Assembly (NCBI RefSeq): GCF_964204865.1
Contig: NC_135264.1
Coordinates: 12,462,001-12,526,000, forward strand
Length of the DNA: 64,000 nucleotides
DNA from: Styela clava
Lineage: Eukaryota
Direction of reading: 5' to 3'
Shown here: positions 1-63,432 of the stretch, one piece after another
Layout: every line of letters starts with the position of its first letter
Position numbering within the stretch: the stretch's first letter is position 1
Made by a program: the position numbers and the translations under genes
The notes under the pieces: model-generated
Seen by the model: the letters and a program-made list of their open reading frames with translations, nothing else
What the model was told of the DNA's origin: nothing
The model's database searches: none

Positions 1-1214
1 GCTCAAACTGGCCACTACCCATCCTACGGTTCACAATATCAACAAGGCACTAGTAGGCAGTATTACAACCCATATAATCAAAACTCGTACTCCCAGTACC
101 CACAAACAAACTATCAACAATATCAATCGAATGGCTACAATTATCCACAATCGACGGGAGTTTGGGGACCACAGACAAGATCTTCAGAAATCACGGAAGA
201 AGATAAGAATGCTGATAAGAATGACGATAAAAAACCAAAGATCAGATCATTTGGCTTTGACACGTATTCCATGATGAACAACTACGGTTACAATCCCATG
301 ATGCAATACCAACAAAATTATCCTATGCAAGGACCAATCATCGCCACAATGTGCAAGTAAGTTTAATAATTTTTATTGAAACGTAAATATAATACGATTC
401 GACACCGTATATTAAATATCGAGAGCTTTAAAGAGCTTTTAACCGTACATGTTGCGATTTTCCTTGACATTCCTTAGGTGATATTATTCAAGTTTTGAAA
501 TTGATTGATTTAAAACCTTACGATGCCTTTACCTAATTTATCATTTTATTTAGACGACCAGGACAGGCCTGTCAATGCAAAACAAGTGAAGACTGTGAAT
601 GCAAAAGCAGACGACCGAAGCTTTGCACTCAAAAATACACAGACGAAAGACGATTGTTTCGTGTATGGGAATATGTCACCATACCTGTCACTCAAACACA
701 CACCTACACAGACCAAACACAACAAGCGAATGATGGACAGACCTATGAACAAGATCCGGCAACAATGAGAAGCGGAGATGGAAACGATCAAACATTCCCT
801 GCACAGTCGCAAACTCACAGTACGACAGACTACCAACAACAACAACAACCGCAACAACAGCAGCCACAAGGCAGATATGAGCTCCAACAAAAGTGGCTTT
901 ATTTCAGAGTAAGTCGATTGTTATTTCATATATTGTATGCTTTATACTTACTACTTATATAAGTCCCAAAGAATCTGGTGTGAAAATTAACTCTTCAAGG
1001 CATATTCGATTCTGAGAATCAAAAATGTCACCATTTCGAAGTAAACATAGTTTAAACTGTATTCATAGCAGTTTAGCAACAAGCAAACAAATAATTAAAT
1101 ACATAATTGAGCAAATATTTAATTTTACTTAATCACATTCTCACATTTTAGAGACCCAGCGGTTGTGAATGCGAAACAATGAAGAAAACCCAAGAATACA
1201 ACTTCTTCGGCTAA
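1..1214 (+). CDS. Gene A (5'-truncated): long-form cystine-knot-like protein with Tyr/Gln-rich and Gln/Thr-rich low-complexity segments; exons <1-356, 554-908, 1152-1214
   Basis: Frame 1 is open from base 1 (AQTGHYPSYGSQYQQ...GPIIATMC). GTAAGT donor at 357 (phase 2) and TAG acceptor at 553 give K-RPGQACQCKTSEDCECKSRRPKLCTQKYTDERRLFRV...QQKWLYFR. GTAAGT at 909 (phase 0) and AG at 1151 give RPSGCECETMKKTQEYNFFG*. Cys spacing is identical to gene B. Confidence 0.85.
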
Positions 1215-1734
1215 AATAAATAATTTCAGTGATCCATGATCTCGAACAACGAGAAGTTGCGGGATATGCTGGTCAGTTGCGGATCTGGCTTCACAGACTA
1301 TTGAATGGGAACGAAAAGTTCCAATTGTGGTATGAAGCAACTCGACGACGTATTGGCAATCGGTTGCGAATTGACAGTTGGCGTTTCATCTAATTTTCGT
1401 ATTTCTATCTGATGATATATACGTTTTTGAATCTTTATTTATTGGTATTTGCTTATTTCTCAACATCTTTTTTCAATAAAAAAATAAAATAAAAAAAATA
1501 CGAAACATTGTCGTTTGCGACTTAACTGTTTTACTTATTGCAACACACAAAGGTTATTATAATTACTTCTGCGCCACAGTTAAGTAGCTTTTAAGAAGTG
1601 ATGAGATAAAAGGGGGTTTGCGGAGAACTGCTCTTGCAATGCTGTTTCGAAAGTTCTGTATAAGATTTATTAAAAGCGTGCCATGTCAATGTAGTTTATT
1701 TTCGTAATGAAATAGATACATTTTCTGAAATGAA

Positions 1735-1800
1735 ATTATCTGTTGTTAGTGAAAACCTACAAAAGAGAATCTGTTCTCAAAATTTTGAATTCCACCACTG
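1735..1800. repeat. Dispersed repeat fragment, also present near 50015-50080
   Basis: ATCTGTTG.TAG...ACAAA.GA.AA.CTGTT.TCAAAATTT.GAAT.CCACCACT aligns between the two sites. Confidence 0.5.
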
Positions 1801-3292
1801 CTATCGACGTGACCTAGTACACATACTATGTTCCGGCGTCCGCAATCTTGGTTTACATACTACAGGAGCGCCAATTTAGTTACAGCAAACTGGACTAACC
1901 AGAGCTTGAACTTCGATTTTCAGCTATAAACAAAAAAGTTTTAATCGACTCCGAACCATTTACACAATCTCGAGGACTCCGACCCGTAATGCGCATTTGT
2001 AGAAATGCTCAAAAATATAAAGCGCAAATTACCCATATGTCTGTCTACCTTATATAAATCTTTTAAATTTCTACAATTAGGGTTCTATTTTGTGAATAAC
2101 ATTTTTTAACTATCAGCAGCTTTAAAATGTTACTTTTTACCGCAGACGGCAAGCGTAGTTTATGGCGTCACCCCAAAACTATCACGCGAACAAAATTTTA
2201 GTCATATTTGGTAACGAACGCGGTAAACAGCTTGTGAAAAAAATGATTTCGATTTTATAGTGAGAGATTACAATCAAGAGCGGACTTTTCAGTAACTATC
2301 AGTCTTACTCCGTGTATATCCCTAATGTTATTTCATTTAGTTTTTCAAGCAGACCAATGCATAATTCACATGTGTTCCAACAATCACAAACATATTCATT
2401 ATTTGTTGCAATGTCATAAAACTGGAAGGGAAAGATTTATGCTGATTTGACACACCAACATTTTAAGATCTGATTCTAGACTTGGATGCCGTGTAGCTTG
2501 ACTTTTCCGCACAATTTTAACCAATACTGCAAATTATTATTTCGTATGCGTATTATGAAAGATTCCAAAATAACCGAGTGAGGAAACTTGCATATGTGTT
2601 CTAACAGAAATACGGGTGTACAATATTTTATTGATTGCTTCTGTTTGACAAATATTTTAATTTATATATATAACTTAACGATATCTTTATGAAAAAAAAA
2701 CATTATCTTATCGCAAACTAAAAAAAAAGGGGAAAGTTCTGCTTCTTAGCTTTATAGTTATTAAACACGAATCACACCACTATAATATTACTTTCATTGA
2801 GCTATTGAGTTCTTCCTGATAATATTAACATTCTCACTGATTTAATTCCTTGCATTTAGCCATTGAACAAAAAGATTACGGAAGTTATAATTCAAATTTT
2901 TAGAAAGAAATCACTGTTTATTGTAGAGAAACTATTTGTCATTCATTCCTGGCCTCGACACAATTGCTACCTAAGCATCATTTGGTTGCTTATGGAAGAA
3001 CATGGAAATTGAACTAGTGTGCCTTTAATGATTGGAAAACCGATTGGAGATAGATTACTTTGTGTTTGCATATGTAGAATAAGCTCGGAGAAAAGCATAA
3101 TAAGAAACTTAGTCTTTTACGATAAGGAATAATACCACGGCTCCGTGAGAGAAAACTAGCGGCTCCGCGAGCTATTCGTTTACCTATTATAGTACTGACT
3201 TGGCTAATTATGTACGCAATAAAAAATAATGGCATTAATAAAATTTCACAACGGCACGGTCGAATAGTGGAAACAAGGCGATAATTCGAATA

Positions 3293-3412
3293 TGGCATTA
3301 TCTATAAGATAATTTTCCTCGGGTGAGATCTCATCCGGTGCAATTGTAACGTTGGCATTATCTATAAAATAATTTTCCTCGGGTGAGATCTCATCCGGTG
3401 CAATTGTAACGT
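3293..3412. repeat. 2 x 60-bp tandem duplication
   Basis: TGGCATTATCTATAA(G/A)ATAATTTTCCTCGGGTGAGATCTCATCCGGTGCAATTGTAACGT occurs twice with one mismatch. Confidence 0.95.
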
Positions 3413-4629
3413 AGTATCAAATAACACAAGTATCAAATATTTTATACCGAATTCGATTCGTCATTTTTGAAAAAAATTTCAGGAACGGTCGGCACTTGTT
3501 CTCGAAAAATTATCTGTGAGATTTCGTTTTGCTATTTGCTCCTTCATTAATTTATTATGTGTGTTTCTTCATTACTGTGATGTTTATCACTGTTTACTAT
3601 TCATATACATCTAACGATATTAGGGTAAAATAATCTATAAGTTCCAATAGACAGTGACATATACCCATCCCAGCCTTGGTGCCACATTTTGAATCTACTT
3701 TATTAATATGTTTGTTAGGTGTCAAATTTACAGCATCAGTATATTGTTTTTATTCCAATAAATTTATTGTGGGCTCCGTAAATAATACCCTATTGACGAG
3801 TTCCAAAACACCAAAAGTTTGAGAACCCCCGTCCTGGAAAAATAGTTTCAAATTACCTCATTACCTGTTGGTAAATCAGGACCATAGTATTTGCTTTAAA
3901 ACCAATTAGAATGATGGCTGTTTATATTGGTATGTATGTCTTAATTATATTTTTCATATTTTTTATTCACTTTGATGGTTAGCTTCAAAAAATTTCACGC
4001 AAAAATTTCATAATTTTCGAAAAATCATTAGAGTGTTTGTAATTGCTTAATTTTTATCACGATTCAATTTTTGAAACTAATTTTTCAGTTGACGTAAAAT
4101 AAAACACTTATATACAAATTACCAACAAATTATACGACATTTGACAACATTTAATATTCATATAAACTATTATGTCTTCATTATTTCCAAATAAATGAGT
4201 TTACCATTCCCGTTAATGAATTTCGCATGAGAGTTAGGGCCGAATGACGCAAAAAGAGGATTAGGACTTTTTAATTGAGCTAAACAACCATGACAATGGC
4301 AATTACTCCAACTAAATCTTTTTAAACAATTATAAAATTGATATTAACAAGTAATTATTCTTGGAAAGATTAATACTTGATTCAAGCACGGTTCAGTGAA
4401 ATAAAGCTACAATTTTAACCGGATTCATTATATTCCTAACTTGGTCTACAGATAATTTTGATTTTGATTGGGAAAAGTTATCGCGATTGGTATATTAGCA
4501 ATATCTTGCTGTTTGAATTCAACGAATGTGATTAACGTAAATTAATTTAATAAGTAGAAATATAATATAGTATTATGAATACTAATTGCAAACATCACAA
4601 ACTTTTCTTTGTCGGCCTCAGTCAATATT

Positions 4630-4693
4630 TGACGTAAATTATTGAAAATGCGTCACATGACGTACAATTCGAGCAAAATGTTTAGTATATATA
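4630..4693 (+). promoter_or_regulatory. Putative B1 core promoter: CRE/ATF-like motifs and TATA box (mirrored upstream of B2)
   Basis: TGACGTAA at 4630, TGCGTCA at 4649, TGACGTA at 4658, TATATATA at 4686, about 100 bp upstream of the ATG. Confidence 0.45.
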
Positions 4694-4785
4694 GAGAGTC
4701 CGGTATCTAACAAATCATATCAAAATCTTAACGAGATTTGAATATAAAATTATTTTTAAAACTAAGTTTGAAATTGAAAAATAAG

Positions 4786-6992
4786 ATGTTGCTGAAAGGA
4801 CTGTATCTAGTGATGACTGTCGCAACTGTATATGGAAATGTAAGTATTTTTCCTATTGTGTATTTGAAAATATAAATAATCAAATTTTAAATCAATCTAA
4901 TTAATTTCTACACTATATTGAATTGATATATTTTTGTTGGAACAAATAAAATTCATTTGCTAGGAGTACTAAAATCACTAAAAAATTGGATGTTTATGTC
5001 TAACATAGTATAGTTGGGTATGAAAATTATATTCATCATTTTTGACGAGATATTTTCATGTTCACGATCTAAAAACTTGAAATGAATCGCTGTAATATAA
5101 ATCAAATTATATTTTTTATTTATTCCAGGACTTATTGGACAAAGCAAGAGAACTTCGAACATGTGGAAGGTACGTATTTCATATTTGATTTAGAATTATA
5201 AAATAGTAAGTTCGTCCTAAATTCATGGTACAAAAACTGCTTTATTATGGAGAAATTTTTATCTGACGTTCACAGTGTAGTATTTATGCACAAAAATGCA
5301 AATAATAAACAAAGTCTTCTCTTCTTTTAGATTTGAGGAGAGAAAATGCAATGACGACAAAGCCGCAGTTTATTACACATTAACCAATCCGGGAAAGTGT
5401 TTAACGAAAGAATGCCTTCTAAAGCCAAGTACTGGATACACTGAACATCCTGACAGAAATCCTTACGTGAAATTTTTTCCTCAAAAATTCTCACAGAAAA
5501 TTATCTACACTTTCGATGAAATAAAGGCTAAAACATGCGGGTAGGCACAAGTTTTGTTATATATAATATAGTAAATAGCATTGAGGTATTTATTTTTGTC
5601 TACAAAATTGGATTTCATGAAATAATTATGAGATATGCAAACGCCGATTATAGCCATAGCTGTAGGCCACACACTGAATACCTCTATTTGGAAACAAGAT
5701 TTTTTTCAAACAACTGATGACTCGCACAGGAGTAATTTGTTTATTAATTTAATCATTACGAAACAGCATTTTGAAACGTTAACTACGTCAGCAAAAATTA
5801 GGTTGATACGATTTTAACTGAGAATATATTTTTTTTCAGTTTTCAAAATCAACCATGTACCTGTAAGCAAGGAGACAAATGCACTTGTGACAACGATAGA
5901 CTCAAAATATGCAAGCAAAAATATAGATATGAAAGAAGCTACTTCCTTGTAATTAACACAGCAAAACAAGCAATCACCTTAACAAAGCCAGTGGTTTCTC
6001 ATTCTACACAACAGAAACCTTATCATCACCAGCAATACTATAATCAGCAACAAGCTCAGATGAATTCTCAACCCAACAGCTATTCATCGTATAATAACCC
6101 GGCTCCATCGTATAATAACCCAGCCCCAAGCAACACCAATAATAAACAAGGAAATAATTATGATGAATGGTATAGCACAAGAACAGGCGAACTTCCCAAT
6201 TATTACCCCAAACCAAATATGCCGAGACCACAAAATGTCGGCGGCAGCTCGATCTTAAATCATCTTATGATGCAAAAATTTATGGGCGGTTCCAAATCTG
6301 GAGGAAATTCAGGTATGATGAAATGGTTACTCATGTCTCAGATGATGAATAAACAAGGCACTGGACAACAACAACAACAACAAGTCGGATATGACACCGG
6401 AAACACTGCTCAGAATCATGCTTCCCACACACCTGGACCAAATACCCAGCACAAATCCAACGGACGACAGAAAGCAGCAAAACATGGCACCGTGTTCAGT
6501 CCGACAATGCTTTATTACATGATGAAGAGAAACAATAAAGACTCCGGTTCCAGTGGAAGTAAATTTCTTCAAATGTTACCAATGTTAATGGGAAATAACA
6601 ACTTATTTGGAGGTCAATTGGAACTCAAATCTTTGTGGGTGCAAGTACCATACGATTGCAAATGTGAACACAGGGAAGAACAAGAATATGATGATGACGA
6701 AGACGATGATGATTCCATATTTTCACTCATTCCATATTTGTTGGGAGGGGGAGGGAACCCTATGACAGCATTAATGGGAGGGGGAGGGAACTCTATGGCA
6801 GCATTAATGGGAGGGGGAGGGAACCCTATGGCAGCCTTAATGGGAGGGGGTGGAAACCCTATGGCAGCATTAATGGGTGGATCTGGTCTTGGTGGCAATC
6901 CACTTAATGTTTACAGCATGCTAATGAATCAGAATAATAATAATGACTATGGCTCCCCTAGATCAAATTCGCTTCCATTCTTACCATACTAA
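4786..6992 (+). CDS. Gene B1: secreted long-form cystine-knot-like protein, 485 aa; exons 4786-4839, 5129-5169, 5331-5540, 5840-6992
   Basis: Signal-peptide-like MLLKGLYLVMTVATVYG. Three GT-AG introns (phases 0, 2, 2) join in frame with ORFs 5296..5544 and 5991..6992. 12 Cys: ...KAKTCGFQNQPCTCKQGDKCTCDNDRLKICKQKYRYERSYFLV [low-complexity loop] LKSLWVQVPYDCKC. Confidence 0.9.
6744..6875 (+). repeat. Coding 33-bp minisatellite x4 encoding GGGGN(P/S)M(A/T)ALM
   Basis: Four GGAGGGGGAGGGAACCCTATGGCAGCATTAATG-like units. The B2 copy is at 17595-17726. Confidence 0.95.
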
Positions 6993-12628: not shown

Positions 12629-13488
12629 ATGAGACTTCTGACGATCTTTGTTTATTGCTGTGTTATAGCATATTGCATGGCTCTAGACGTGGAAAATCCG
12701 AACCCTCTACCCGAATGTCAAATGAAAAATGTTCCGTAAGTCCGTTTATATATTTGGTTTTATAAATGCTTTTATGCAAAAATAAAATCTGAAACAATAA
12801 TTTAATTCTTTCTTCTTATTTCGATTGGAGATTTCTAAAATAATTATTAGAGAACGTGAGTTCTTAAAAAGTTCTAAATATCGTATGTGATCTTTTAATT
12901 ATGTATGTTAACGTTCAATAATTTTTTCAGAATTAAGAATCCTGAATATTGCCAAGTTACAACCCCGACTAATTTCTGCCCAACGAAAAAATGCAGAATC
13001 AAAATTACAAAAGGTTTTTTGTCTACTGATCCCCCGAGTGAAGTCGACTTGATTGGAGGTATTTACGAGGCAGTTGACGAGTGCGAGTAAGTCAATTATC
13101 AAATTATACATAGACATTCGGTTTGAGGATATGCTTTTTTACACTACAAAAAAATATATTTCCATTTAAAATTATATAAAAAATCTACCTTGTTTCTCAT
13201 ATTTTAGGGTATACAATAAGAAATGCAGTTTATGGGTTAAAGGTTGTACATGTCAAGCGAGAGTCAAGATGATATGGAGGAAAGCCAAAATTCAAACCAA
13301 AATATCCAGAGAACCAGCAGAAAGATATGTTCGCATCAGGGTGAGCATTATTTTGTGTTCTGATTCCTAAAGGTTGATTACTGTTTATTAAACCAGTGTT
13401 TATTCTATTTCTTCAGATTCCAGATGGTTGCATTTGTGCTAAAAAGACTGTCATACTGGATGACAAGATATTCAAGTTTCCAAATTAA
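12629..13488 (+). CDS. Gene C1: secreted short-form cystine-knot-like protein, 155 aa; exons 12629-12735, 12931-13086, 13208-13340, 13417-13488
   Basis: MRLLTIFVYCCVIAYCMA-LDVENPNPLPECQMKNVP|IKNPEYC...AVDECE|VYNKKCSLWVKGCTCQARVKMIWRKAKIQTKISREPAERYVRIR|IPDGCICAKKTVILDDKIFKFPN*. GT-AG introns in phases 2, 2, 0; 10 Cys after the signal peptide. Confidence 0.92.
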
Positions 13489-15629: not shown

Positions 15630-17843
15630 ATGTTGCTGAAAGGACTGTATCTAGTGATGACTGTCGCATTTGTATATGGAAATGTAAGTATTTTTCTTAT
15701 TGTGTATTTGAAAATATAAATATTCAAATTTTAAATCAATCTAATTAATTTCTACACTATATTGAATTGATATATTTTTGTTGGAACAAATAAAATTCAT
15801 TTGCTAGGAGTACTAAAATCACAAATCACTAAAAAATTGGATGTTTATGTCTAACATAGTATAGTTGGGTATGAAAATTATATTCATCATTTTCGACGAG
15901 ATATTTTCATGTTCACGATCTAAAAACTTGGAATGAATCGCTGTAATATAAATCAAATTATATTTTTTATTTATTCCAGGACTTATTGAACAAAGCAAGA
16001 GTACTTCGAACATGTGGAAGGTACGTATTTTAGATTTCATTAGAAATTATGAAATAGTAAGTTCGTCCTAAATTCATGGTACAAAAACTGCTTTATTATG
16101 GAGAAATTTTTGTCTGAAGTTTACAGTGTAGTATTGATGCACAAAAATGCAAATAATAAACAAAGTCTTCTCTTCTTTTAGAATTGAGGAGAGAAAATGC
16201 AATGACGACAAAGCCGCAGTTTATTACACATTAACCAATCCGGGAAAGTGTTTAACGAAAGAATGCCTTCTAAAGCCAAGTACTGGATACACTGAACATC
16301 CTGACAGAAATCCTTACGTGAAATTTTTTCCTCAAAAATTCTCACAGAAAATTATCTACACTTTCGATGAAATAAAGGCTAAAACATGCGGGTAAGCACA
16401 AGTTTTGTTATATATAATATAGTAAATAGCATTGAGGTATTTATTTTCGTCTACAAAATTGGATTTCATGAAATAATTATGAGATATGCAAACGCCGATT
16501 ATAGCCATAGCTGTAGGCCACACACTGAATACCTCTATTTGGAAACAAGATTTTTTTCAAACTGATGACTCGCACAGGAGTAATTTGTTTATTAATTTAA
16601 TCATTATGAAACAGCATTTTGAAACGTTAACTACGTCAGCAAAAATTAGGTTAATACGATTTTAACTGAGAATATATATATTTTTTTCAGTTTTCAAAAT
16701 CAACCATGTACCTGTAAGCAAGGAGACAAATGCACTTGTGACAACGATAGACTCAAAATATGCAAGCAAAAATATAGATATGAAAGAAGCTACTTCCTTG
16801 TAATTAACACAGCAAAACAAGCAATCACCTTAACAAAGCCAGTGGTTTCTCATTCTACACAACAGAAACCTCATCATCACCAGCAATACTATAATCAGCA
16901 ACAAGCTCAGATGAATTCTCAACCCAACAGCTATTCATCGTATAATAACCCAGCTCCATCGTATAATAACCCAGCCCCAAGCAACACCGATAATGGACAA
17001 GGAAACAATTATGATGAATGGTATAGCACAAGAACAGGCGAACTTCCCAATTATTACCCCAAACAAAATATGCCGAGACCACAAAATGTCGGCGGCAGCT
17101 CGATCTTAAATCATCTTATGATGCAAAAATTTATGGGCGGTTCCAAATCTGGAGGAAATTCAGGTATGATGAAATGGTTACTCATGTCTCAGATGATGAA
17201 TAAACAAGGCACTGGACAACAACAACAACAACAAGTCGGATATGACACCGGAAACACTGCTCAGAATCATGCTTCCCACACACCTGGACCAAATACCCAG
17301 CACAAACCCAACGGACGACAGAAAGCAGCAAAACATGGCACCGTGTTCAGTCCGACAATGCTTTATTACATGATGAAGAGAAACAATAAAGACTCCGGTT
17401 CCAGTGGAAGTAAATTTCTTCAAATGTTACCAATGTTAATGGGAAATAACAACTTATTTGGAGGTCAATTGGAACTCAAATCTTTGTGGGTGCAAGTACC
17501 ATACGATTGCAAATGTGAACACAGGGAAGAACAAGAATATGATGATGACGAAGACGATGATGATTCCATATTTTCACTCATTCCATATTTGTTGGGAGGG
17601 GGAGGGAACCCTATGACAGCATTAATGGGAGGGGGAGGGAACCCTATGGCAGCATTAATGGGAGGGGGAGGGAACCCTATGGCAGCCTTAATGGGAGGGG
17701 GTGGAAACCCTATGGCAGCATTAATGGGTGGATCTGGTCTTGGTGGCAATCCACTTAATGTTTACAGCATGCTAATGAATCAGAATAATAATAATGACTA
17801 TGGCTCCCCTAGATCAAATTCGCTTCCATTCTTACCATACTAA
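15630..17843 (+). CDS. Gene B2: near-identical copy of B1, 485 aa; exons 15630-15683, 15980-16020, 16182-16391, 16691-17843
   Basis: Same exon lengths and splice positions as B1, open frame, about 10 amino-acid differences by manual comparison. Confidence 0.9.
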
Positions 17844-23444: not shown

Positions 23445-24303
23445 ATGAGATTTCTGACGATCTTTGTTCATTGCTGTGTTTTAGCATATTGCATGGCTTT
23501 AGACGTGAAAAATCCGAATCCTTTACCAGAATGTCAAATGAAAAATGTTCCGTAAGTCCGTTTATATTATTGGTTTATAAAATGCTTTTATGTAGAAATA
23601 AAATCTGGAACAATGATTTAATTATTTTTTCTTATTTCGAATTGAGATTTCTAAAATAATTATTAGAGAACGTGAGTTCTTAAAAAGTTCTAAATATCGT
23701 ATGTGATCTTTTAATTATGCATGATAACGTTCAGTCATTTTTTCAGAATTAAGAATCCTGAATATTGCCAAGTTACAACCCCGACTAATTACTGCCCAAC
23801 GAAAAAATGCAGAATCAAAATTACAAAAGGTTTTTTGTCAACTGATCCACCGACTGAAGTCGACTTGATTGGAGGTATTTACGAGGCAGTTGACGAGTGC
23901 GAGTAAGTCAATTATCAAATTATACATAGACATTTGATTTGAGGATATGCTTTTTTTACAAAACAAAAATATATTTCCATTTAAAATCGTATAAAAAACC
24001 TACCTTGTTTCTTAAATTTTAGGGTATACAATAAGAGATGCAGTTTATGGGTTAATGATTGTACATGTCAAGCGAGAGTCAAGATGATATGGAGGAAAGC
24101 CAAAATTCAAACCAAAATTTCCAGAGAACCAGCAGAAAGATACGTCCGCATCAGGGTGAGTATTATTTTGTGTTCTGATTCCTAAAGGTTGATTACTGTA
24201 TATTAAACCAGTGTTTATTCTATTTCTTCAGATTCCAGATGGTTGCATTTGTGCTAAAAAGACTGTCATACTGGATGACAAGATATTCAAGTTTCCAAAT
24301 TAA
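23445..24303 (+). CDS. Gene C2: short-form paralog, 155 aa; exons 23445-23551, 23747-23902, 24023-24155, 24232-24303
   Basis: Same exon lengths and splice sites as C1; intact frame. Confidence 0.92.
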
Positions 24304-28120: not shown

Positions 28121-29479
28121 CAGCGTTTCCCAAACTTTTTTGACCACGGAACACTTACGTTTTTTATCTCGCCTCGCGGAACACCAAAAAATGAAAGGGT
28201 AAAAATGGTGCAATTCAGCGGTTCCCAAAGGGTGTGCCGCGACGCACTAAAGTCGTCAAAACTAACAAAATTGTGTAAAGCATACCTAAAATATGAATGA
28301 ATGTTTTACATATTGCAAATGCTCTGTATATGAATCAATATACCGGTATTCATTTTTCTTTTCTATGTCGTTCACTTTCTATTACATAATGTCTTTGATG
28401 TTACGTAACAAGGGAAATAGAAGTTCTTGCTGTAATTTCGCGAGCTGCAGAACTCCAGTTTATTTATCTGCTGAATCAAGTTTAGCGAACATGAGTGATT
28501 TTTTCAGCATTTCAGAGTAAAATCAGGCGGCGATGGGGGGCTAAGAGCTGACTTTTTACTTTTACACGTTTGCCTATGGCATTGGTTCACAAACTGGGGT
28601 TCGCGGTCGCTTAGGGGTCTGCGAAGCGATTTTAGGGGGACCGCGAGACAACTTTAACCTCGGCACAGAAGCACTTTGATTTGAAGTAAAATGTTGATGT
28701 CATGCTTTTACAGTGTTTCTCCAAAGCACGACACGCTCTACCGAAGACATTATTACGTAACAAACGTTGATAAACGTGGTAAGTCAGGAGATCAGAGCGT
28801 ATCTAGATATAACGATTCAAATTTTGGTTTAGCTGTGATAAGTTCCGGAGGAAAACAAAAACCACAGTCTTATCCTGATGTTGCTGAGATAGCCCTAAAA
28901 ATGATCATTTCATTTGTAACAACTTACAAATGTGAGGCAGCTTTTTCTTCATTTCTCGCTATTGAAACAAAATGTTGAAACAGAATTGACGTGAGTTACG
29001 ATATGAAAGTTGCATTATCCAAAACAGAACCCAAGATAGAAGAACTGGAGCCAAGCAAGGACACCCATCTCATTGAACTGTGTCAATGTCATTCAATATA
29101 TTAATGCTTGATATACCGCGTTGCTGTTTGCTCCCATTTCTTTAGTGGACCGCGAGTCATCAGAAAAATTGTACGGGGGCCGTTATGCATAACTTTTTAA
29201 AAAGTTTGAGAACCACTGGCCTATAGTAAATAGCAAAACCAAAATGATTAGTGTCAACTTGATAATGAACTAGACATTAAACAAGCTAGGCGGACAGTTA
29301 ACGATAATACCACTACCCTCGAAAGGTTAGGCCGACGGTGACGCGATATTGAACGGTCGCCAACTTCGCGATCGCGATGGCAACCAATTTAGTCGTAATT
29401 TTGATCCATTTTCCACGGAACACTCGGAAGACGCTCACCGAGCACTAGTGTTCCGCGGAACACAGTTTGGGAAACGCTA
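28121..29479. mobile_element. Non-autonomous hAT element (family 2) carrying a nested element
   Basis: TIRs CAGCGTTTCCCAAAC / GTTTGGGAAACGCTA. Perfect 8-bp TSD ATATAGAC (28113-28120, 29480-29487). The site is empty in the C1 and C2 units. Confidence 0.92.
28580..29218 (+). mobile_element. Nested internally deleted hAT (Buster/Charlie-like) element with transposase remnants
   Basis: TIRs CATTGGTTCACAAAC / GTTTGAGAACCACTG, TSD GCCTATGG / GCCTATAG. Encodes YPDVAEIALKMIISFVTTYKCEAAFSSFLAIETKC*NRIDVSYDMKVALSKTEPKIEEL, resembling the hAT C-terminal dimerisation region. Confidence 0.85.
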
Positions 29480-30751: not shown

Positions 30752-31609
30752 ATGAGATTTCTAACGATCATTGTTCATTGCTGTGTTTTAGCATATTGCA
30801 TGGCTTTAGACGTGGAAAATCCGAATCCTTTACCAGAATGTCAAATGAAAAATGTTCCGTAAGTCCGTTTATATTATTGGTTTATAAAATGCTTTTATGT
30901 AGAAATAAAATCTGGAACAATGATTTAATTATTTTTCCTTATTTCGAATGGAGATTTCTAAAATAATTATTAGAGAACGTGAGTTCTTGAAAAGTTCTAA
31001 ATATCGTATGTGATCTTTTAATTATGATGATAACGTTCAGTCATTTTTTCAGAATTAAGAATCCTGAATATTGCCAAGTTACAACCCCGACTAATTACTG
31101 CCCAACGAAAAAATGCAGAATCAAAATTACAAAAGGTTTTTTGTCAACTGATCCACCGACTGAAGTCGACTTGATTGGAGGTATTTACGAGGCAGTTGAC
31201 GAGTGCGAGTAAGTCAATTACCAAATTATACATAGACATTTGATTTGAGGATATGCTTTTTTTACAAAACAAAAATATATTTCCATTTAAAATCGTATAA
31301 AAAATCTACCTTGTTTCTTAAATTTTAGGGTATACAATAAGAGATGCAGTTTATGGGTTAAAGATTGTACATGTCAAGCGAGAGTCAAGATGATATGGAG
31401 GAAAGCCAAAATTCAAACCAAAATTTCCAGAGAACCAGCAGAAAGATATGTCCGCATCAGGGTGAGTATTATTTTGTGTTCTGATTCCTAAAGGTTGATT
31501 ACTGTATATTAAACCAGTGTTTATTCTATTTCTTCAGATTCCAGATGGTTGCATTTGTGCTAAAAAGACTGTCATACTGGATGACAAGATATTCAAGTTT
31601 CCAAATTAA
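30752..31609 (+). CDS. Gene C3: short-form paralog, 155 aa; exons 30752-30858, 31053-31208, 31329-31461, 31538-31609
   Basis: Same exon structure as C1; intact frame. Confidence 0.92.
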
Positions 31610-38586: not shown

Positions 38587-39444
38587 ATGAGACTTCTTAC
38601 GATCTTTGTTTATTGCTGTGTTATAGCATATTGCATGGCTCTAGACGTGGAAAATCCGAATCCTCTACCAGAATGTCAAATGAAAAATGTTCCGTAAGTC
38701 CGTTTATATTATGGGTTTAATGAGTGCTTTTATGTAAAAATAAAATCTGAAACAATGATTTAATTCTTTCTTCTTATTTCGAATGGAGATTTCTAAAATA
38801 TTTATTAGAGAACGTGAGTTCTTAAAAGTTCTGAATATCGTATGTGATTTTTTAATTATGCATGCTAATGTTCAATCATTTTTTCAGAATTAAGAATCCT
38901 GAATATTGCCAAGTTACAACCTCGACTAATTTCTGCCCAACGAAAAAATGCAGAATCAAAATTACAAAAGGGTTTTTGGCAACTGATCCCCCGAGTGAAG
39001 TAGACTTGATTGGAGGTATTTACGAGGCAGTTGACGAGTGCGAGTAAGTCAATTATCAAATTATACATAGACATTTGATTTGAGAATATGCTTTTTTTTC
39101 AAAACAAAAATCTATTTCCATTTAAAATCATATAAAAAATCTACCTTGTTTCCTATATTTTAGGATATACAATAAGAGATGCAGTTTATGGGTTAAAGAT
39201 TGTACATGTCAAGCGAGAGTCAAGATGATATGGAGGAAAGCCAAAATTCAAACCAAAATATCCAGAGAACCAGCAGAAAGATATGTCCGCATCAGGGTGA
39301 GTATCATTTTGTGTTCTGATTCCTAAAGGTTGATTACTGCATATTAAACCAGTGTTTATCCTATTTCTTTAGATTCCAGATGGTTGCATTTGTGCTAAGA
39401 AGACTGCCATACTGGATGACAAGATATTCAAGTTTCCAAATTAA
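38587..39444 (+). CDS. Gene C4: short-form paralog, 155 aa; exons 38587-38693, 38888-39043, 39164-39296, 39373-39444
   Basis: Same exon structure as C1; intact frame. Confidence 0.92.
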
Positions 39445-44692: not shown

Positions 44693-44712
44693 GTAAACAA
44701 TGGAAATTCCCA
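44693..44712 (+). promoter_or_regulatory. Forkhead + NF-kB-type composite motif upstream of D
   Basis: GTAAACAATGGAAATTCCCA (GTAAACA plus the reverse complement of GGGAATTTCC), 19/20 identical to 50466-50485; TATAAA at 44826. Confidence 0.65.
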
Positions 44713-44877: not shown

Positions 44878-47800
44878 ATGAAACGGTTTATTCATTTTCT
44901 TGTCTGGCTGTGTGTTGGCGCGGCCTTCTGCTCAGCGGGAGGTCCACCAAGACGGGATAAAGCGCCACCACCACCACCACCAGAATGCCAACTTAAAAGA
45001 CCACCGTAAGTGAACTGCCATTGCTTATATTTTTCAGCGTGTTTATATTTTATAATAATGTAATTATACTTTCCTGGTAATCTAATTCACCCATATTCGT
45101 TTTAATGTAAGTCAAATTGTCCTTAATACGAGCTCGTTAATATCTAGAAAGGTCGTTTAAAAAAAGTTTAAACAAGATGTCCTGTCATTTAATTATTTTT
45201 TATTCATTTCACATTTTTCTAAATATTTTCTAAAAATTATTTTAGATTAAACAATCCGGATCCCTGTCCCATGCATGTCTATTGGGAACACAGATGTTTG
45301 CCTCCGAAACCATGTTTATTTACAATTAAGAAAGGGATTGTAAGAGAAAAAGGCGTGAAACATTACGTGAAACTGTCTCTTCCAGTAACCCACTTATCTC
45401 GGGAATGCAAGTATGTAAAATATCTGTTCTATTAAATGTAATTTTAAAAGTTGCATGTTACTAGATATTCTTCGCTGTTACAATTTTAATAGGACAGCTG
45501 AAAAATCTACGTTACATATTTAAAGTATAGTTTCATAGTTTCAAATTCGTTACACTCGCAAAAAGGTAAGTCGTATTAATCTAATTTTATTTTCAGAAAA
45601 TATGGAAAAATATGTAGTCCTGGAAAAAAATATTGCACATGCCAACACAAGGGAGAGTGGGTTAAGATAAAGGCTTGGGTACTTTGGAAAAAGAACAACT
45701 TTCATATTTCTGCTCTCAAAAAAGTTGAAGCGCTAGTAAGTTAATGAAACGGAAAAAGCCTGACAAGCTTGATTAAAATTATCCTGACAGATATTGTAAT
45801 GGCTTCTGTTTTCAAAATAGAGTTTGCTTGCAACATTGGTCTTAAAAATGGCTATTCAATGTCTTGGGTACTTTGGAAAAAGAACAACTTTCATATTTCT
45901 GCTCTCAAAAAAGTTGAAGCGCTAGTAAGTTAATGAAACGGAAAAAACCTGACAAGCTTGATTAAAATTATCCTGACAGATATTGTAATGGCTTCTGTTT
46001 TCAAAATAGAGTTTGCTTGCAACATTGGTCTTAAAAATGGCTATTCAATGTATCACTAATAAATACTTCGTCATGTAATAAATCACTGTCAACGGATTTA
46101 CTATTCGAATATTAGGTACCACGTGATCTGCGTCGCTTCACTTGGACACAGAACGTCTCTGAACCGATCGTGAATTGCGCGAGAATTCACCTACAACGCT
46201 CGCTAACAGACAAAAGCGACAAATTTGAAAAATCGTCTTTGCGTTGTGGTGTTATTTGTTTTCTTTGCGTTTCGATCGTTCATTTCAATTCCATATGTCG
46301 CACAAAGAGGTACCGACACCGTTCCCTAAATTTAGAAACGTTAAATCAGATGAGGTATTTAAAATAAATATTCCAGATTTTAAACTCTGTGTGATTGGCG
46401 GCACGGGATTAGCCGTTTCATGCATGAACCAAACATAAATTTGTTAAACAAAAATTAAAAGTTGAATTAGCTTTTGCGTGAAACCGTACATAGTATAACA
46501 CGAACAAGCTATGACCAGAAAAGAAATGGCAGGACATAGTTCTTTTAATGTACTTTCAAATAATTCTTTAGTGATCCCTTTCATTCTTGACTAAATAATG
46601 TTTCGAAAGTGTAAACATTTCACTCGGGCATGCATGGCGGGTGGAGTGTAGAAATCGTGAACAGGAGTATGGCGTAAAATCAATCGTGAATTTCGATGTA
46701 ACAACGCGCACTGTCTCGTTTACCAATTGTTTCATCGTCGGAAATGATTACATTCGTTATATTTTGAGCATTTTTGCACTAATAAATAGGGCGTGACATT
46801 ATCAAAATTGTCAAGAGAAGTAAAAGTGAATTCGCAAATTCCGTAAATAAAATCGTGAATTACTCGGTAACGATATTAGCTATAATGATCGCGCGGTTTG
46901 TTGAAAGAAAACGTCGGAACTTGGAAGAGTTAGTTATAATTAGTGCCTGGCCATCTATTATGCACAAAAGTAAAAAAGCGCAATTTTTTTCAGCATTAGG
47001 TCGCATATGTAAATTATTATTCAGGAAGCGCTGTTTATTAACGTCATCTCGTCATATGGCCACGCAGAAATGCCTTTATTGTCGAATTATTTAGTCACTA
47101 TTTTAAATCAACATTCGGGATTGACGCAATCGCAGCTTTGCGAGGTTTATCTGTAAAGTAACATAGACACCATAAAAAAGCATAGCAAAGTTAATTACGG
47201 TATTGTCTTAATAAATATCTACATCCCAGTATCGATAATAATATACCATTCGCTTAATATTGTGACGGTAAATTTACAAACGTTGATAAGTAATATGAGA
47301 GCCAACGCAAATGATAAAAATGAGAATAATATTAATTTGGGTTTTTACATCAATCCTTAATGGTTTTAACAGTTGTTGCCGACGTGACCGCACGGGTAAA
47401 CCCGAAATATAAACGTCGATGTCCGCCGACCCGAAAGAATTAATACTTGCAAATAACAGAACGGTTTTATAAATTATATATCGCCGCAAAAACGGTCACG
47501 GTGACAAAAACAATCAGCGATTATGACGAAATTAACCAGTAAAAAAACGCTTTGTAGCGAATTTTTCAATGTCTTTATTAATTTCCAAAGGGAGTATCGA
47601 CCGACGTTGTAGACCTCCTGTTGTGTATAAAAAAATATTCGTTATTCGGTATTCGTTAAAAATATTCGAACTATTCGATTCGAAAAAAATATTCGATTTT
47701 GCCCACCCCTACATGTGATATATTATACTAAGATTTAATATTTTATCTGAGACTTATATTCTGACTCTTAATCTGTATTTGAATTGTCAGTTATTCCGAG

Positions 47801-48000
47801 ATATATATAAAAATATTTACTATTTTTTTCTGGTAATCTAATCTAATATGTAATTGTGATTACCAAAGCAACCCGTAGTCACATTACTATTTTCTAGCTT
47901 ATCCAATTACATTTTAGCCCTCATTTATTTTAATATTATTTTATAGGTCCCGGGTGGATGTATGTGTGCAAGGAGAAACATAGCATCTTTCGTACCATAA
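44878..48000 (+). CDS. Gene D: secreted short-form family member, 161 aa; exons 44878-45005, 45246-45410, 45597-45735, 47947-48000
   Basis: MKRFIHFLVWLCVGAAFCSA-GGPPRRDKAPPPPPPECQLKRPP|LNNPDPC...LSRECK|KYGKICSPGKKYCTCQHKG...KKVEAL|VPGGCMCARRNIASFVP*. Intron phases 2, 2, 0; 10 Cys. Confidence 0.9.
45674..46051 (+). repeat. 2 x 189-bp tandem duplication spanning the D exon 3 donor
   Basis: CTTGGGTACTTTGG...GGCTATTCAATGT at 45674-45862 and 45863-46051, about one mismatch. Confidence 0.95.
46100..47711. mobile_element. Probable transposon-derived insertion in D intron 3
   Basis: The intron is 2.2 kb versus 76-529 bp in paralogs. It ends in clustered ATTCG motifs and TTTGCCCACCCCTA, resembling the TAGGGCTGGGC...ATCGAATA end at 54864. 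The left terminus was not found. Confidence 0.4.
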
Positions 48001-50465: not shown

Positions 50466-50485
50466 GTAAACATTGGAAATTCCCA
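50466..50485 (+). promoter_or_regulatory. Forkhead + NF-kB-type composite motif upstream of E
   Basis: GTAAACATTGGAAATTCCCA, 209 bp before the ATG; TATAAA at about 50540. Confidence 0.65.
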
Positions 50486-50674: not shown

Positions 50675-51719
50675 ATGGAAGTTGCAGTTTTTTGTATTGT
50701 ACTTGCTTGTGTGACTGCGGGTTGGGCTTGGCCGCCTATAGGACCCAAAGACCTGTCTCTGCCTGTTCCTCCGCCGTGCAAACTTAAAATTCCACCGTGA
50801 GTATATAGTTCACTGTCAAAAATATTGGCTCCTAATATTTTGTCTTTCTAATATTTATGAAAATTTTATATTTGTAATATAAATTTTGGTTCAGATGGAA
50901 AAATCCTGAACTTTGTAGCGAGGAGAAAAAGTCTAAATGTTTTCCGAGAACTTGCATCTTTACAATAACGAAGGGATACATTTACAAAAATGGAAAAAAG
51001 AAGGAGGTCAAAATTGCAAGGACGGAAAAGATAAAAGTTGTTGAATGTCGGTAGGTTAAATCCATGTATTGTTATATTACACACATATGTAACTGATTGA
51101 AGAGACTGATCCATGAATTGGCAACTCGGAACTTAGTATGGGCCAAACTGTATTTTGAGTATATTATTCGTACAAACATTTGATAAGATACGAAAGAGTG
51201 CTACTTAATAGAATGTAATTAAATTATATGTAATCAAATTAATTTTCAAATTACATTAATAAAAATAATTACAGGGACTATCTGGATAAATGCGACGCCA
51301 AGTTTTTATTCTCGTGTAGATGTCAACATATGGGAAAAAAAATCTTTAAATTCTTGTATGTCGCAAAGAAAATTAAAGGAAGATGGAAATCTATTAGAAC
51401 TTTGGTTCAAGTCAATGTAAGTCTTGTTAAGTATACAAGCCTTGTGAATGTCATCCTTTCAATGCAGATTTCGTAACAAATATAAATGTCCATTAATGGC
51501 TCAAACACATTTTGACACTTTTGACGCCATTAGAACATTGACACTGCTCAAATGTTACGTAAGTCACCTGTGAGCAAATATCTAAAAAAACGTAATATTT
51601 TTGCAAACTCATTATAAATTGATTAATTTTAGTGATATATAACTCAAAATAATATTTTATTATCACAGATTCCTGATGGATGCATATGTGCCTCACCGCT
51701 CATTGTCGAGATAGATTGA
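50675..51719 (+). CDS. Gene E: secreted, strongly Lys-rich short-form family member, 156 aa; exons 50675-50796, 50895-51050, 51275-51416, 51669-51719
   Basis: MEVAVFCIVLACVTAGWA-WPPIGPK...PPPCKLKIPP|WKNPELC...KNGKKKEVKIARTEKIKVVECR|DYLDKCDAKFLFSCRCQHMG...LVQVN|IPDGCICASPLIVEID*. Intron phases 2, 2, 0. Confidence 0.9.
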
Positions 51720-55473: not shown

Positions 55474-55479
55474 CTCTAA

Positions 55480-55544: not shown

Positions 55545-55608
55545 ACAGCTCACTTTGTAGTAAATTTTCTGAAAGTTTCGAAAACTAGTAAAACAAACTT
55601 ATTTACAA

Positions 55609-55687
55609 CATTTGACGTATTGCTGAATTTGAAATAAAGCAAAATGTTGTCATAGATTTATCACACACGTCAGCAATACGTCAAATG
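55609..55687. repeat. 18-bp perfect inverted repeat with 43-bp spacer
   Basis: CATTTGACGTATTGCTGA ... TCAGCAATACGTCAAATG. Confidence 0.9.
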
Positions 55688-55849
55688 AGTTAGCATTGGG
55701 ATGGATTGTAAATATACTATGGCTGCTAATCCCGGTATGGGGATGTAAGAACTGCAAGTTCGTTACGTAGTTTTATGTTGTCATGTGTGCAGTGGCAAGA
55801 AGGAGTTGGAATTCTTGACGCTTCAGCTCGATTAAATCTGGCGAAATCG

Positions 55850-58796: not shown

Positions 58797-60074
58797 ATGA
58801 AACTCTTCATTGCTATATTGCTTTGTGCAGGAACTTTTCTGTGCTCAGCGGAGTCGAAAAATGAGAGAATACGTCGATCGACGCCATTTTGCGCCGTTAA
58901 AAACCCGCCGTAAGTATAGCAGATATAGCAATGAGTAGCCCTCTTATATGTCGCCGTTCTTAGAAGTTTATTCGTGATTATAATATTATTTTTTTTTTTA
59001 ATACCACAGATCGAAGAATCCCAACCAATGCGAAACGAAGCCAGTGTCCAGATGTCCACAAAGAGATTGCATTTTTCGTGTTAGAGAGGGTAAATTGAAC
59101 ACTTGGGAAACAGTTGAATTGATATGGGAATTGGACAAACACGTGGAAGAATGCAAGTATGTCTACACTAAGTTTTACTACTACAAATATATATACAATC
59201 ACATCATAGAGTAATTTTTTTTTGACCTGATATTTTAATGAAACAATTTAGATTATCATTCTTTCATTTAGAATTTGACAACTCGAGTCGACCTTGCCGT
59301 CTGAATATTGTAATTTATCTTTTTAATATTATCTTTCCGGCACTTGTTTTAGGAACAGGGTATCTGGAATGAAATGTAGCAACGCTAATCTTCCGTGCAA
59401 ATGTCGCCACAAAGGCAAAACATTATGGGAAAAGGCTTATGTTTGGGTAAAGATCGCTGGGAAATTGGAAGTACAAAATCGCTGGATCAGATTCACGGTA
59501 TTTCATTTTATATATTTACAATTTTATAAAGACAATGAAAAGAGTTAGAGGTGATAGACAAGGAAAAGTATGTTAAACTATCTATGACGTCATCTGACCT
59601 ATGATGTCACAAAATGTCTTTCAATGTGCATTGTGTGGTGAACTTAAATAACTAATAGGTTTCGAAATATATTAACATCAATAAAATATTTGAAACTTTG
59701 ACCCGATTAAATTACTAATAAGTTTTAGTACAAGTGTTGTGCATTTTCAGAGTTAAAGTTTTATGTACAAGCTATGTTATTTGAAGCACTTTATTAATAT
59801 ATATCTGTATTTTTATGTTTTTTTGCTGTGATATATGCGTTCGTACAAAATTTATATCTATTGTAAACAAGATCAAAAACATTTAAATCTAGAATATTGA
59901 TAGAATTAATAATTACTAAACTATAAGAATTTAACATTTCAAACCTTTGGAAAAGTTACTAATTTTCGACAAAGCTTGAGTTTTGATTAACAACAATTTA
60001 TAATATTATTCTTGACTTTTTTTCAGATCCCAGATGGATGCATGTGTGCAGTGGTTAATGTCCCTCACAGATAA
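58797..60074 (+). CDS. Gene F: secreted short-form family member with furin-type site, 150 aa; exons 58797-58909, 59010-59156, 59353-59497, 60027-60074
   Basis: MKLFIAILLCAGTFLCSA-ESKNERIRR-STPFCAVKNPP|SKNPNQC...HVEECK|NRVSGMKCSNANLPCKCRHKG...NRWIRFT|IPDGCMCAVVNVPHR*. Intron phases 2, 2, 0; TATAAAA at 58741. Confidence 0.9.
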
Positions 60075-61044
60075 ATCAGCTTTCCTTTCAATTGCTGGCA
60101 AAAATGAGAACATTTAATTATGATTTGACACATTGGTGCTTATAATGTTTTTTTTTGGCTTTCTCTTATCGTTTGTTCAAAAATAATGTAATGCATTGTT
60201 ATTCTAAACTATAAAAATTAAACTGCTAGAGACTAATTTTGAATATTATGATAATAAAATAAATTGTATTCCGGACAACATTGTTTGATGAGTTTATAAC
60301 GATAGTAAGGCTATTTTGAGTAGAACAATATGATACTGGCTTTTGTGGTTTTATATCGGAGCGAAAAATATTCAAAAAACAGTAACTTGTGAGTTGATGA
60401 ACAAATGTAAATTGGTGGAAAAGCATCAATATTAACCCCCCAAAATAAGGTTTTCGAATTAAAATATAGACAAGGATTTGGAACTCTTCATCAATAATCC
60501 ACTATTGTCTTATGTCCGCTAAAATTAGTAATAAAAACATGTTTCTAATTGAAGAAAGAAAAGTACGACACAATTTGCTTTGTTTACCTTCGAGTCTGTG
60601 ACGTCATACTGAAAACGCTAAAACACATGATTCGAACCTGTTGTAGCTATGCGCGCTCAGCCTTTCCCCCTTTTTGTGTTGCATTGTCGATGTAAGCAGT
60701 ATTTCCGACTCACCAGTACAACCTCGTACATCTGCTAACAACTCATTGATCATGTAAAAATCCCAAAGTCACTCGTTGTTGTGTGTTTTTATTTTGTATG
60801 AATAACATTGTTGTGAGCAGAAATCTTTGCCTATAGTCTGGAGAGTTTTTTTTATCTCTGCTTTGGTCAACAACGAACAAAGTACAATTTTCATGATAAG
60901 AGCATGTGGTTCGGCATCAATGTATTTTTCTAGCGGTCTAATGACCGATTACATTACAATTTTAATAATATGTTTTGTATACTTATATTTATAAAGTTGA
61001 GAATACATAACGGAGGCTTCAATACGTGAATACATAATTGAATA

Positions 61045-61275
61045 GGAAACTGGGTAAAAAATTCGGTACTTTCGTATAGTATAGGTACCAGATTAGGGTT
61101 GAGCCATAATTTTATTCCGATTTTCTTATATTAGTTCTAAGAGTTCAGGGACTGTCTGTGTTAGCCACGTGACCTTCTGCTCATAGGCTTTCGTCCCTTT
61201 ACACAACTTGATGTGAAGTAGGTGAAAAAAATTAGTTACCTCCATATTGGTACACACTTCTGGAGCGCCAGAAAT
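61045..61275 (+). repeat. Dispersed repeat, same family as 53415-53595
   Basis: Reverse-complement similarity to 53415-53595. Confidence 0.75.
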
Positions 61276-62151
61276 CCTATATGTAATATCAAATTTATAT
61301 CGACTTTAAGTGCGGATTCAACTCTTGGTCTGAATCCATAGCTATTCTGATTTTAAAAATAAAAAATGAATTTACCGCTCCATGGCATTTTAAAAACAAA
61401 AATTCATTTTGTTCATTTTGAATGGCAAGAATTTGTTTTTTAATAAACCACGGCATCACGAAAAGCTCCGAACGGATTAAACTATAACCATTTGGAAGTA
61501 TGGTTGAGATGGATTAGATGGAAATTTCAGATTTAAAAACCTCTATTTTTTATAATGAAAAATATGGTTTTTCATCGTTTAGTCTTAAAATAGAATATGC
61601 AATATGCAAAAAATCTTGCTACCTTATTATTTCAACATATTAAAGGTTCAATATTTCAAGTAAAAAAATTGTTATTTTAAAAAATACGATAAAATTCATT
61701 GAGTGTTTGATTATTTTAATATTCGGCTTTCTAATTCCTAGTGGTATAATTAGTTCAAATAACTTTTTGACAGTTAGCAGTTGATTATATAGATTTTATT
61801 AAATACAATTTGAATCAGACCACCCGCGTGAAAATAATCCGACGTAAAGCTGTACATTGTTTATCGCAGGTTGTAATCAATAGGACAAAGAAGTTTTTAA
61901 AATCGAAACGATGCCACAAGTTTTCTGCCACAAGGAATTACCTGTAAATAATAAAATTAATTTTTGTTCAAATAAATACAGTCGCTTATACGTCATAAAC
62001 ATTTTTTCCCTTCCATTTCTCTCAAATATCAAAATTGAAGATTCAAAACAATTTTCGTTTTAACAATAATGCATTTTTTTTCATTTCAGTCTATCTATTT
62101 AACGCCAATCTGCTAAGACAAGTTTTCATATGCTCTTATTGTTGCTTCACA

Positions 62152-63432
62152 ATGAGACTGTTTACGCTGGTCATTTTCGCCACATGTGTTGTGCTGGGTT
62201 CGGCGCTTCCTCCACCATGCATGACGAAAAAACCACCGTGAGTATCAAAGACTAACATGTCCAATTGTTTCGAAAGTTGCGTAATTATTTTATTTGTTAT
62301 TATTACAAATTTTTCAATTTTTTCACGAGAAGAAAATGTTGTTTACGGATAGCTGATCAAAGTGTTGATATGCATATTCACAAAATAATATTAAATTTAT
62401 CATTTCAAACCCCAAATTTTTTACTAAAAATTAAATTAGAAAAATTTTAAAATTATGCAAGTTTTAAATAATTTGTGTTTGATTGGAAACTAAACAATTG
62501 TGTAACTTACTATCTTTCCTTGCGTTATGCTTTTGCGCACTTTGTGTTTGATTATTTTATATGGAAATAATTGCATAGTAGTTATAAAATAAATTATTGC
62601 GTAATATTTCAGATCAGAGAACCCCATGAAATGCACACATGTCCCACAGTCGCTGTTTTGCCTTGTTAGACCATGTACTTTTACGGCAATAGAAGGATTG
62701 ACATTAATAAACCAAAAATTAAAGAGTGTAAAATTAGCGAAAAAAATCAGAGTAACAGTCGATGAATGCAAGTAAGTATAGTTTGATTTTTTAAGGTGTA
62801 TACCAAGAAAAATAGTATCACGTTTTATTATTTTTGTTTCTGAACCAAAATTGTTTAAATTTTTTTTAAATTTATATATTGCCAAATTAGTCCAGAACGA
62901 ATTTCTTATTTTATTTTTGAAGAATAATAATATTATCATTTAAAAAAGTTTAATGAGTCGGCCATGGCGAAGTAACTAACATTGTAATCAACTACTGACT
63001 ATTTCAGAATAATAAAAAACATTTTTCTATGTTCCCACATAACAGAAAACCGGGTCAGAAATGCTCTGGGTATCGTTGCCCATGTAGGTGCTACAATAAG
63101 GGAAAATGGATCTGGGAAGTCGGTATGGTAACAGTGAAAATTAATGGAAACTGGGTATCTGTGCCGAAAGCAGTCAAACTCAGGGTAATTATCTAATATT
63201 GCCATTAGGCTTTCTAGATGTATTTGTGTAGACTACACGTGTATTTTAAATCTATAAAAGCAAAGTAATGTAGGCCTTAAGCAATTAAAAAGGTGATGTA
63301 GAATAGAAATGAAAAAAGAAATTATGGAATAAGTTGTGTTTTGATAGATTAGCACCAATAGTAACTAAAAATACTACTATTGCATTTTTATAGGTGCCAG
63401 GGGGTTGCACGTGCACTGAACCTGATGACTAG
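62152..63432 (+). CDS. Gene G: secreted short-form family member, 140 aa, 11 Cys; exons 62152-62237, 62613-62771, 63046-63184, 63394-63432
   Basis: MRLFTLVIFATCVVLGSA-LPPPCMTKKPP|SENPMKC...VTVDECK|KPGQKCSGYRCPCRCYNKG...AVKLR|VPGGCTCTEPDD*. Intron phases 2, 2, 0. Confidence 0.9.

Follow-up and report, generated by a model that had tools for sequence, protein, structure and literature searches.

The 64,000-nucleotide window considered here (Styela clava contig C19:12462001-12526000, + strand; G+C 28-37%, no N) carries a tandem array of 11 co-oriented genes of a single family, all on the + strand, whose products are predicted secreted proteins with five disulfides and, in structural models, a plausible fold-level likeness to the cystine-knot cytokines. 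Eight of the genes are short forms (C1, C2, C3, C4, D, E, F and G) and three are long forms (A, B and B'), in agreement with the tandem family proposed in a preliminary description of this DNA. The genes, their splicing as modelled by RefSeq, the secretion signals, the cysteine framework and the purifying selection on the young copies can be read from the DNA and are the firm part of the account. The assignment of the fold to the NGF/Spaetzle-type cystine-knot growth factors or cytokines, with two extra disulfides and no pro-domain, has moderate support from the models. The reading as a whole, in which the C19 array represents a family of knotted, secreted ligands of this type, is one that we consider evenly poised between right and wrong.

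The gene models were built from the sequence by means of a motif scan together with in-frame acceptors and donors, and the splicing is as modelled from the sequence and by RefSeq. A six-frame motif scan of the window recovers eight endings of the type [IV]P-x-GC-x-C on the + strand, where NP-x2-C segments number eleven, ten of them in family exons; on the minus strand the same scan gives only chance matches to the short family motifs. Eight start exons encode a hydrophobic leader and close with the C-x2-K-x1-2-P motif, adjoining a GT[AG]AGT donor. All eight short models consist of four exons with AG/GT borders, open joined frames and split-codon phases of 2, 2 and 0, exactly the phases that had been put forward. 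The motif string of the preliminary description (signal peptide, C-x2-K-x1-2-P, NP-x2-C, a segment ending in EC, C...CxC and [IV]P-x-GC-x-C) is likewise borne out, except that the 'KA' element is not general: it appears as RKAK in the C type, EKAY in F and IKAW in D, and is absent in E and G. The description of the family as 'hidden' does not hold, as NCBI annotates the genes. Seven models (C2, C3, C4, D, G, B and B') are letter-for-letter identical to S. clava RefSeq XP proteins named 'uncharacterized protein LOC...', and the genes are therefore unnamed rather than hidden. The short-form genes are as follows (positions within the window; aa, amino acids).

C1, 12629..13488, + strand: 155 aa; exons 12629-12735, 12931-13086, 13208-13340 and 13417-13488; 94-96% identical to C2-C4
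C2, 23445..24303, + strand: exons 23445-23551, 23747-23902, 24023-24155 and 24232-24303; identical to XP_039257749.2 (P0014)
C3, 30752..31609, + strand: exons 30752-30858, 31053-31208, 31329-31461 and 31538-31609; identical to XP_039256855.2 (P0013)
C4, 38587..39444, + strand: exons 38587-38693, 38888-39043, 39164-39296 and 39373-39444; identical to XP_039257960.2 (P0015)
D, 44878..48000, + strand: 161 aa; exons 44878-45005, 45246-45410, 45597-45735 and 47947-48000; identical to XP_039257746.2 (P0019)
E, 50675..51719, + strand: 156 aa; exons 50675-50796, 50895-51050, 51275-51416 and 51669-51719
F, 58797..60074, + strand: 150 aa; exons 58797-58909, 59010-59156, 59353-59497 and 60027-60074
G, 62152..63432, + strand: 140 aa; exons 62152-62237, 62613-62771, 63046-63184 and 63394-63432; identical to XP_039257869.2 (P0003)

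The mature proteins share the cysteine spacing C-x12-C-x7-9-C-x4-5-C-x27-30-C-x6-8-C-x6-7-C-x-C-x33-35-C-x-C. The C, D, E, F and G types are mutually 27-38% identical, and the invariance of all ten mature cysteines at this level of divergence is, as judged from the alignment, far beyond chance. The mature short forms have 122-141 residues, an isoelectric point (pI) of 9.0-9.9, 21-30 Lys+Arg and zero N-glycosylation sequons, and their first conserved cysteine lies 4-17 residues past the predicted signal peptide; a short Arg-Arg stretch near this cysteine is found only in D, F and the F-like copies. G contains 11 mature cysteines, the extra one being located in a CPCRC stretch. This odd cysteine is restricted to G-type members and, in comparison with Spaetzle, could form an inter-chain bond. 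The C copies are mutually 93-98% identical and exhibit a ratio of nonsynonymous to synonymous substitution rates (dN/dS) of 0.18-0.38, which therefore points to purifying selection on young duplicates. Their dS is ~0.09-0.10 in five of six pairs and 0.02 for C2-C3, in agreement with an intron divergence of ~9-10%.

AlphaFold2 models were obtained for G, from 11 aligned sequences, and for an F-like paralogue sharing 34% identity with it, from 13; the mean predicted local distance difference test score (pLDDT) was 65.8 and 61.4, respectively. Each model is characterized by two long beta-hairpins with a pLDDT of ~87-90, which span residues 49-79 and 103-128 of G and residues 56-83 and 109-134 of the paralogue. 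Conserved cysteines stand at both ends of each predicted hairpin, as in the cystine-knot growth factors. When compared by VIA-align with 48,161 PDB representatives at a threshold of Z >=2, the G model returned six chains, headed by NGF (Z 3.5 and 3.2) and followed by sclerostin, VEGF-C, PDGF and an unrelated ribosomal chain at Z 2.0; the F-like model returned five, NGF (Z 3.3 and 2.9) and then again sclerostin, VEGF-C and PDGF. In a second look with VIA-align, the top 22 and the top 25 rows consisted entirely of neurotrophins, at Z 2.7-3.9 and with 2-18% identity over 72-90 aligned residues, and most of these rows placed model residues ~40-130/146 on NGF residues ~10-106/116. The structural root-mean-square deviation (rmsd) was 4.7-8.2 A. 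The monomer comparison by AlphaFold and Foldseek suggested in the preliminary description also gave NGF and NT-3 as its best rows. Language-model neighbours of G and of C, the latter 28% identical to G, comprised clusters bearing NGF, Spaetzle, IL-17, PTTH-like and Noggin domains, with scores of 0.84-0.89.

The neurotrophins (NGF, BDNF, NT-3 and NT-4; PF00243), the best structural match of both models, resemble the S. clava proteins in several traits: a secreted basic domain of ~120 residues, a pair of long, cysteine-flanked beta-hairpin fingers, which in the S. clava proteins are predicted, and a C-x-C at the end of the chain after a hydrophobic strand. Unlike the neurotrophins, the S. clava family has ten cysteines rather than six, a shorter putative ring segment (C-x6-8-C), no long pro-domain and a mature domain that is split over four exons. 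Spaetzle and the Drosophila neurotrophins (PF16077) are invertebrate cystine-knot cytokines with variable extra cysteines and several paralogues, and in these respects, as well as in the language-model comparison, they are close to the family. Unlike Spaetzle, the family is without a pro-domain for proteolytic activation, gives no Pfam match to it and finds no Spaetzle chain at Z >=2.

A number of results weigh against a knotted ligand of this kind. The cysteine-bearing stretches have a pLDDT <60 in both models. All Z values are below 4, and VIA-align warns that a Z <8 may mean only a common arrangement. The Foldseek rows have E-values of 0.27 or worse and none is significant, whereas language-model scores <0.9 are leads only by the standard of the tool itself. 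The sequence models of the short forms contain no long pro-domain of the NGF or Spaetzle kind, and the evidence for expression is that of the RefSeq models. The HMMER comparison with NGF, Spaetzle, Coagulin and IL-17 that had been suggested gave a negative answer: when nine full-length members were run through Pfam hmmscan with E allowed up to 10, none matched NGF, Spaetzle, Coagulin or IL17, and a profile of the family returned 0 matches among PDB sequences at E up to 10. A six-frame whole-genome search with PF00243 (NGF) gave only two sub-threshold matches, both outside the window. No homologue outside S. clava was found with the exon-2 profile or in word-indexed searches, the 51-position profile being too weak for relatives of ~30% identity, and conservation therefore cannot back the fold call. 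What stands of the claimed NGF/Spaetzle/coagulogen-like knot is thus the lean of two models and of the language-model neighbours towards knot cytokines; set against it are Z values of 2.9-3.9, a knot region of low pLDDT and the lack of any sequence match.

Further sequence tests point the same way as the full-length searches. Ten single exons gave no Pfam match, and the Pfam family Cys_Knot_tox was obtained at E 0.13 on one member only. A genome search with PF16077 (Spaetzle) found none, a result of little weight as the same search found nothing in control genomes either. Neither Pfam hmmscan nor the PDB profile search produced a strong full-length match to a family that is already characterised. 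Because each test of sequence membership failed, we do not file the family under NGF, Spaetzle, coagulogen or IL-17; it is set within the cystine-knot cytokine kind without being a member of any of the four.

An explanation that dispenses with the knot is that of a new disulfide-rich two-hairpin fold with no threaded knot, the NGF matches arising as long paired hairpins are rare in the PDB. The modest Z (at most 3.9), the rmsd of several angstroms, the low pLDDT over the cysteine cluster and the absence of a sequence link to any family would all agree with it. We nevertheless hold it improbable, given that the order of cysteines and hairpins is the growth-factor layout and that two models, and likewise two language-model searches, lead independently to a single superfamily. 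The proteins may alternatively be defensive effectors, that is, basic disulfide-rich antimicrobial or toxin-like proteins whose likeness to growth factors is limited to a shared beta-hairpin scaffold. Their pI and Lys+Arg content, the fast-diverging, lineage-restricted tandem array and kappaB-type sites upstream of D and E are in keeping with such a role, although 122-141 residues is large for typical antimicrobial peptides and the toxin-knot match is that of one member at E 0.13; it does not strike us as a probable explanation. The kappaB-type decamer GGAAATTCCC is perfect at 44702-44711 and at 50475-50484, lying 176 bp before the start codon of D and 200 bp before that of E. Four strict decamers of this type occur in the 64-kb window, two being those at D and E, and their position is a hint of immune control.

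A structural role on a similar fold would make the proteins coagulogen-like building blocks of a haemolymph clot, a wound seal or the tunic matrix, with the long-form inserts driving self-assembly. Horseshoe-crab coagulogen (PF02035) has an NGF-like knot with extra disulfides and is a possible functional analogue of the long forms with their self-associating inserts; A, B and B' have Gln/Asn/Tyr/Gly-rich segments of 200-300 residues and GGGGNPMAALM repeats, the existence of several near-identical copies (C1-C4, B/B') suggests a need for gene dosage, and coagulogen is among the weak Foldseek rows (rank 47, E 2.5, template modelling score 0.32). The cysteine count of coagulogen differs, however, the Coagulin family gives no Pfam match at E up to 10, the short forms are without a low-complexity segment, and no activation-cleavage peptide is evident. 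Moreover, Spaetzle, coagulogen and IL-17 structures are all lacking at Z >=2 in either wide VIA-align search. On balance we judge a structural role unlikely. A highly diverged IL-17 offshoot signalling via IL-17 receptors, which the GCxC ending suggests, is very improbable. The [IV]PxGCxC end, preceded by a C-terminal hydrophobic strand, does resemble the V/IGCTCV end of S. clava IL-17 (PF06083) exons, IL-17 is itself tandem-expanded in this genome, and IL-17 clusters are among the language-model neighbours. Nonetheless, the cysteine framework and the intron positions differ, and the IL17 Pfam model has at least 32 exons over its cut-off in the genome, located on other contigs or 530 kb away, with none in the window or the array. 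Profile-profile alignment (hhalign) of the family with eight S. clava IL-17 exons gives a probability of 13%, with the last strand alone aligned. Membership of IL-17 by sequence thus failed in the genome, full-length Pfam and profile-profile tests. The IL-17 exons themselves, on contigs C3, C5, C2, C10, C1, C8 and C19 (loci L003-L010) and mostly in tandem clusters on contigs C3 and C5, indicate a large IL-17 expansion in the S. clava genome that is, by sequence, separate from the ten-cysteine family.

The three long forms are as follows.

A, 1..1214, + strand: long form truncated at the window edge; exon 2 runs to 356 (..ATMC, phase 2), exon 3 554-908, last exon 1152-1214 (RPSGCEC...stop)
B, 4786..6992, + strand: 485 aa; exons ~4786-4839, 5129-5170, 5331-5540 and 5840-6992; identical to XP_077976724.1 (P0005)
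B', 15657..17843, + strand: RefSeq model of 476 aa; identical to XP_077976772.1 (P0024)

The signal-peptide exon of A and the start of its exon 2 lie 0.5-1.4 kb before the window, the former ~1.4 kb upstream. B' is a duplicate of B, ~10.85 kb downstream, and the duplicated block is 92-94% identical in DNA. In both B and B' a single large exon unites what are exons 3 and 4 in the short forms, and this exon (5841-6992; 16692-17843) contains a Gln/Asn-rich insert of ~210 residues; the C-terminus of B consists of an acidic tail and then four or five GGGGNPMAALM repeats. A (1-908) has Tyr/Gln-rich inserts in both predicted hairpins. In their positions, the low-complexity inserts of A and B coincide with the tips of both predicted hairpins, which, on the models, fits solvent-exposed fingers. 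The window is made of tandem blocks, with the 10.8-kb B-C unit present twice and followed by C units of 7.3-7.8 kb.

The remaining parts of the window agree with the claim that every gene in it belongs to the family: a Pfam scan of ten non-family open reading frames (ORFs; 76-149 aa) revealed no other recognisable gene. The ORF at 28691-28978 (+), between C2 and C3, weakly matches the dimerisation domain of hAT transposases (E 0.025) and is probably what is left of a transposon. Exon profiles run over all six frames detected no further family copies in the window, except a partial repeat of D exon 3 within the last intron of D, which measures 2.2 kb.

Relic, 45748..45930, + strand: second copy of the 3' portion of D exon 3, in D intron 3, ~150 bp downstream of the exon

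The repeat agrees with the last 22 codons of D exon 3 at all but the first codon and also includes the two codons that straddle the donor; the element may be a relic or an alternative exon end. For E, no exact database protein was retrieved. Its nearest relatives, P0023 (97/156 identical) and P0004 (93/156), form one 90%-identity cluster (LOC120340344) and reside on a 20.05-Mb contig with the contig C18 matches described below. F has a possible alternative acceptor at 59359, and its nearest database protein is P0008, a downstream paralogue. The full-length searches used database proteins, and the joined C1, E and F models served only for alignment, dN/dS and composition.

The array continues beyond the window. 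Across the genome, the exon-2 profile has 21 matches on the chromosome-scale contig C19 (12.467-12.704 Mb), all on the + strand, and two more on contig C18. Within the 264 kb read around the window we count about two dozen genes, comprising the 21 exon-2 matches and long forms that this profile misses; further long forms and two minus-strand copies are among those outside the window on C19. Starting at window position 58797, three tandem copies of one unit of three genes, of the F type, the G type and a third type exemplified by P0011, span C19:12520797-12558327. The third F-like copy (~12550285-12551330) has GG in place of AG before its last exon and may be a pseudogene. The array is not co-oriented throughout because two family endings beyond the window, at C19:12562906 (VPDGCKC...) and 12606820 (VPGGCKC...), are on the minus strand; the copy at 12562906 has a long tail that is Gln/Tyr-rich and Lys/Asp-rich. 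On contig C18 (5751141-5755076) there is a pair of D-like and E-like genes, of which the D-like product (P0002) differs from D at two residues and the E-like product (P0004) is ~60% identical to E. On sequence the pair could be either an inter-chromosomal duplicate or an unplaced haplotype.

These findings are in accord with the lineage-specific, fast-diverging tandem expansion without a named family that had been claimed, in that only S. clava relatives were found, the types are strongly diverged and Pfam has no match. The database search with the exon-2 profile (51 positions) returned nine genuine S. clava clusters, along with three false positives that were repeat proteins. In leave-one-out trials, however, the profile gave only 17-38 bits to a paralogue at 30% identity, and absence from other tunicates is therefore not established. 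The word-indexed searches, made with the full-length alignment and with P0004, retrieved only S. clava proteins and themselves missed some query members. Literature searches by gene identifiers and by ascidian/Styela clava cystine knot found no description of the S. clava family.

Under the NGF/Spaetzle-type reading, each short form would consist of a signal peptide and, almost directly after it, a basic domain (122-141 residues, five predicted disulfides) in which a pair of long beta-hairpin fingers would extend from the disulfide cluster. The ring may be made up of the last C-x-C together with the E-C/C pair, the two further disulfides being placed toward the N-terminal side. By analogy with the known cytokines, the short forms would act extracellularly as receptor ligands, probably as dimers, and duplication with rapid divergence, in which the finger surfaces are diversified, could yield a repertoire of ligands. 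Use in an immune or wound response is our best guess, again by analogy. As to receptors, the TIR model has three genome matches, on contig C10, which decide nothing on the receptor; given TIR-domain exons in the genome, a Toll-type receptor would at least appear to be available. PF16920 (LRRCT_2 in the library), which we take to be Trk-specific, had no significant genome match, and this result also decides nothing.

According to PMC2586362, tunicates, represented there by Ciona, lack neurotrophins and are thought to have lost them. If the S. clava proteins truly have an NGF/Spaetzle-type knot, the closest invertebrate relatives of vertebrates would have kept and greatly expanded a ligand class that is invisible to sequence searches, which would reopen the questions of which receptors are used and of how neurotrophin and Toll-ligand signalling evolved in chordates. 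It is a tentative and somewhat doubtful proposal that tunicates kept the neurotrophin/Spaetzle superfamily as a sequence-orphan branch in S. clava, with two extra disulfides, no pro-domain and two dozen or more tandem genes, some with prion-like inserts at the finger tips. To our knowledge, no cystine-knot cytokine has been described that combines a ligand with a condensate-forming segment. Should the fold assignment prove wrong, the array would still represent a large, selected, secreted orphan family, and the long forms, which place low-complexity segments inside a disulfide-locked scaffold, may provide a tractable system for extracellular assembly.

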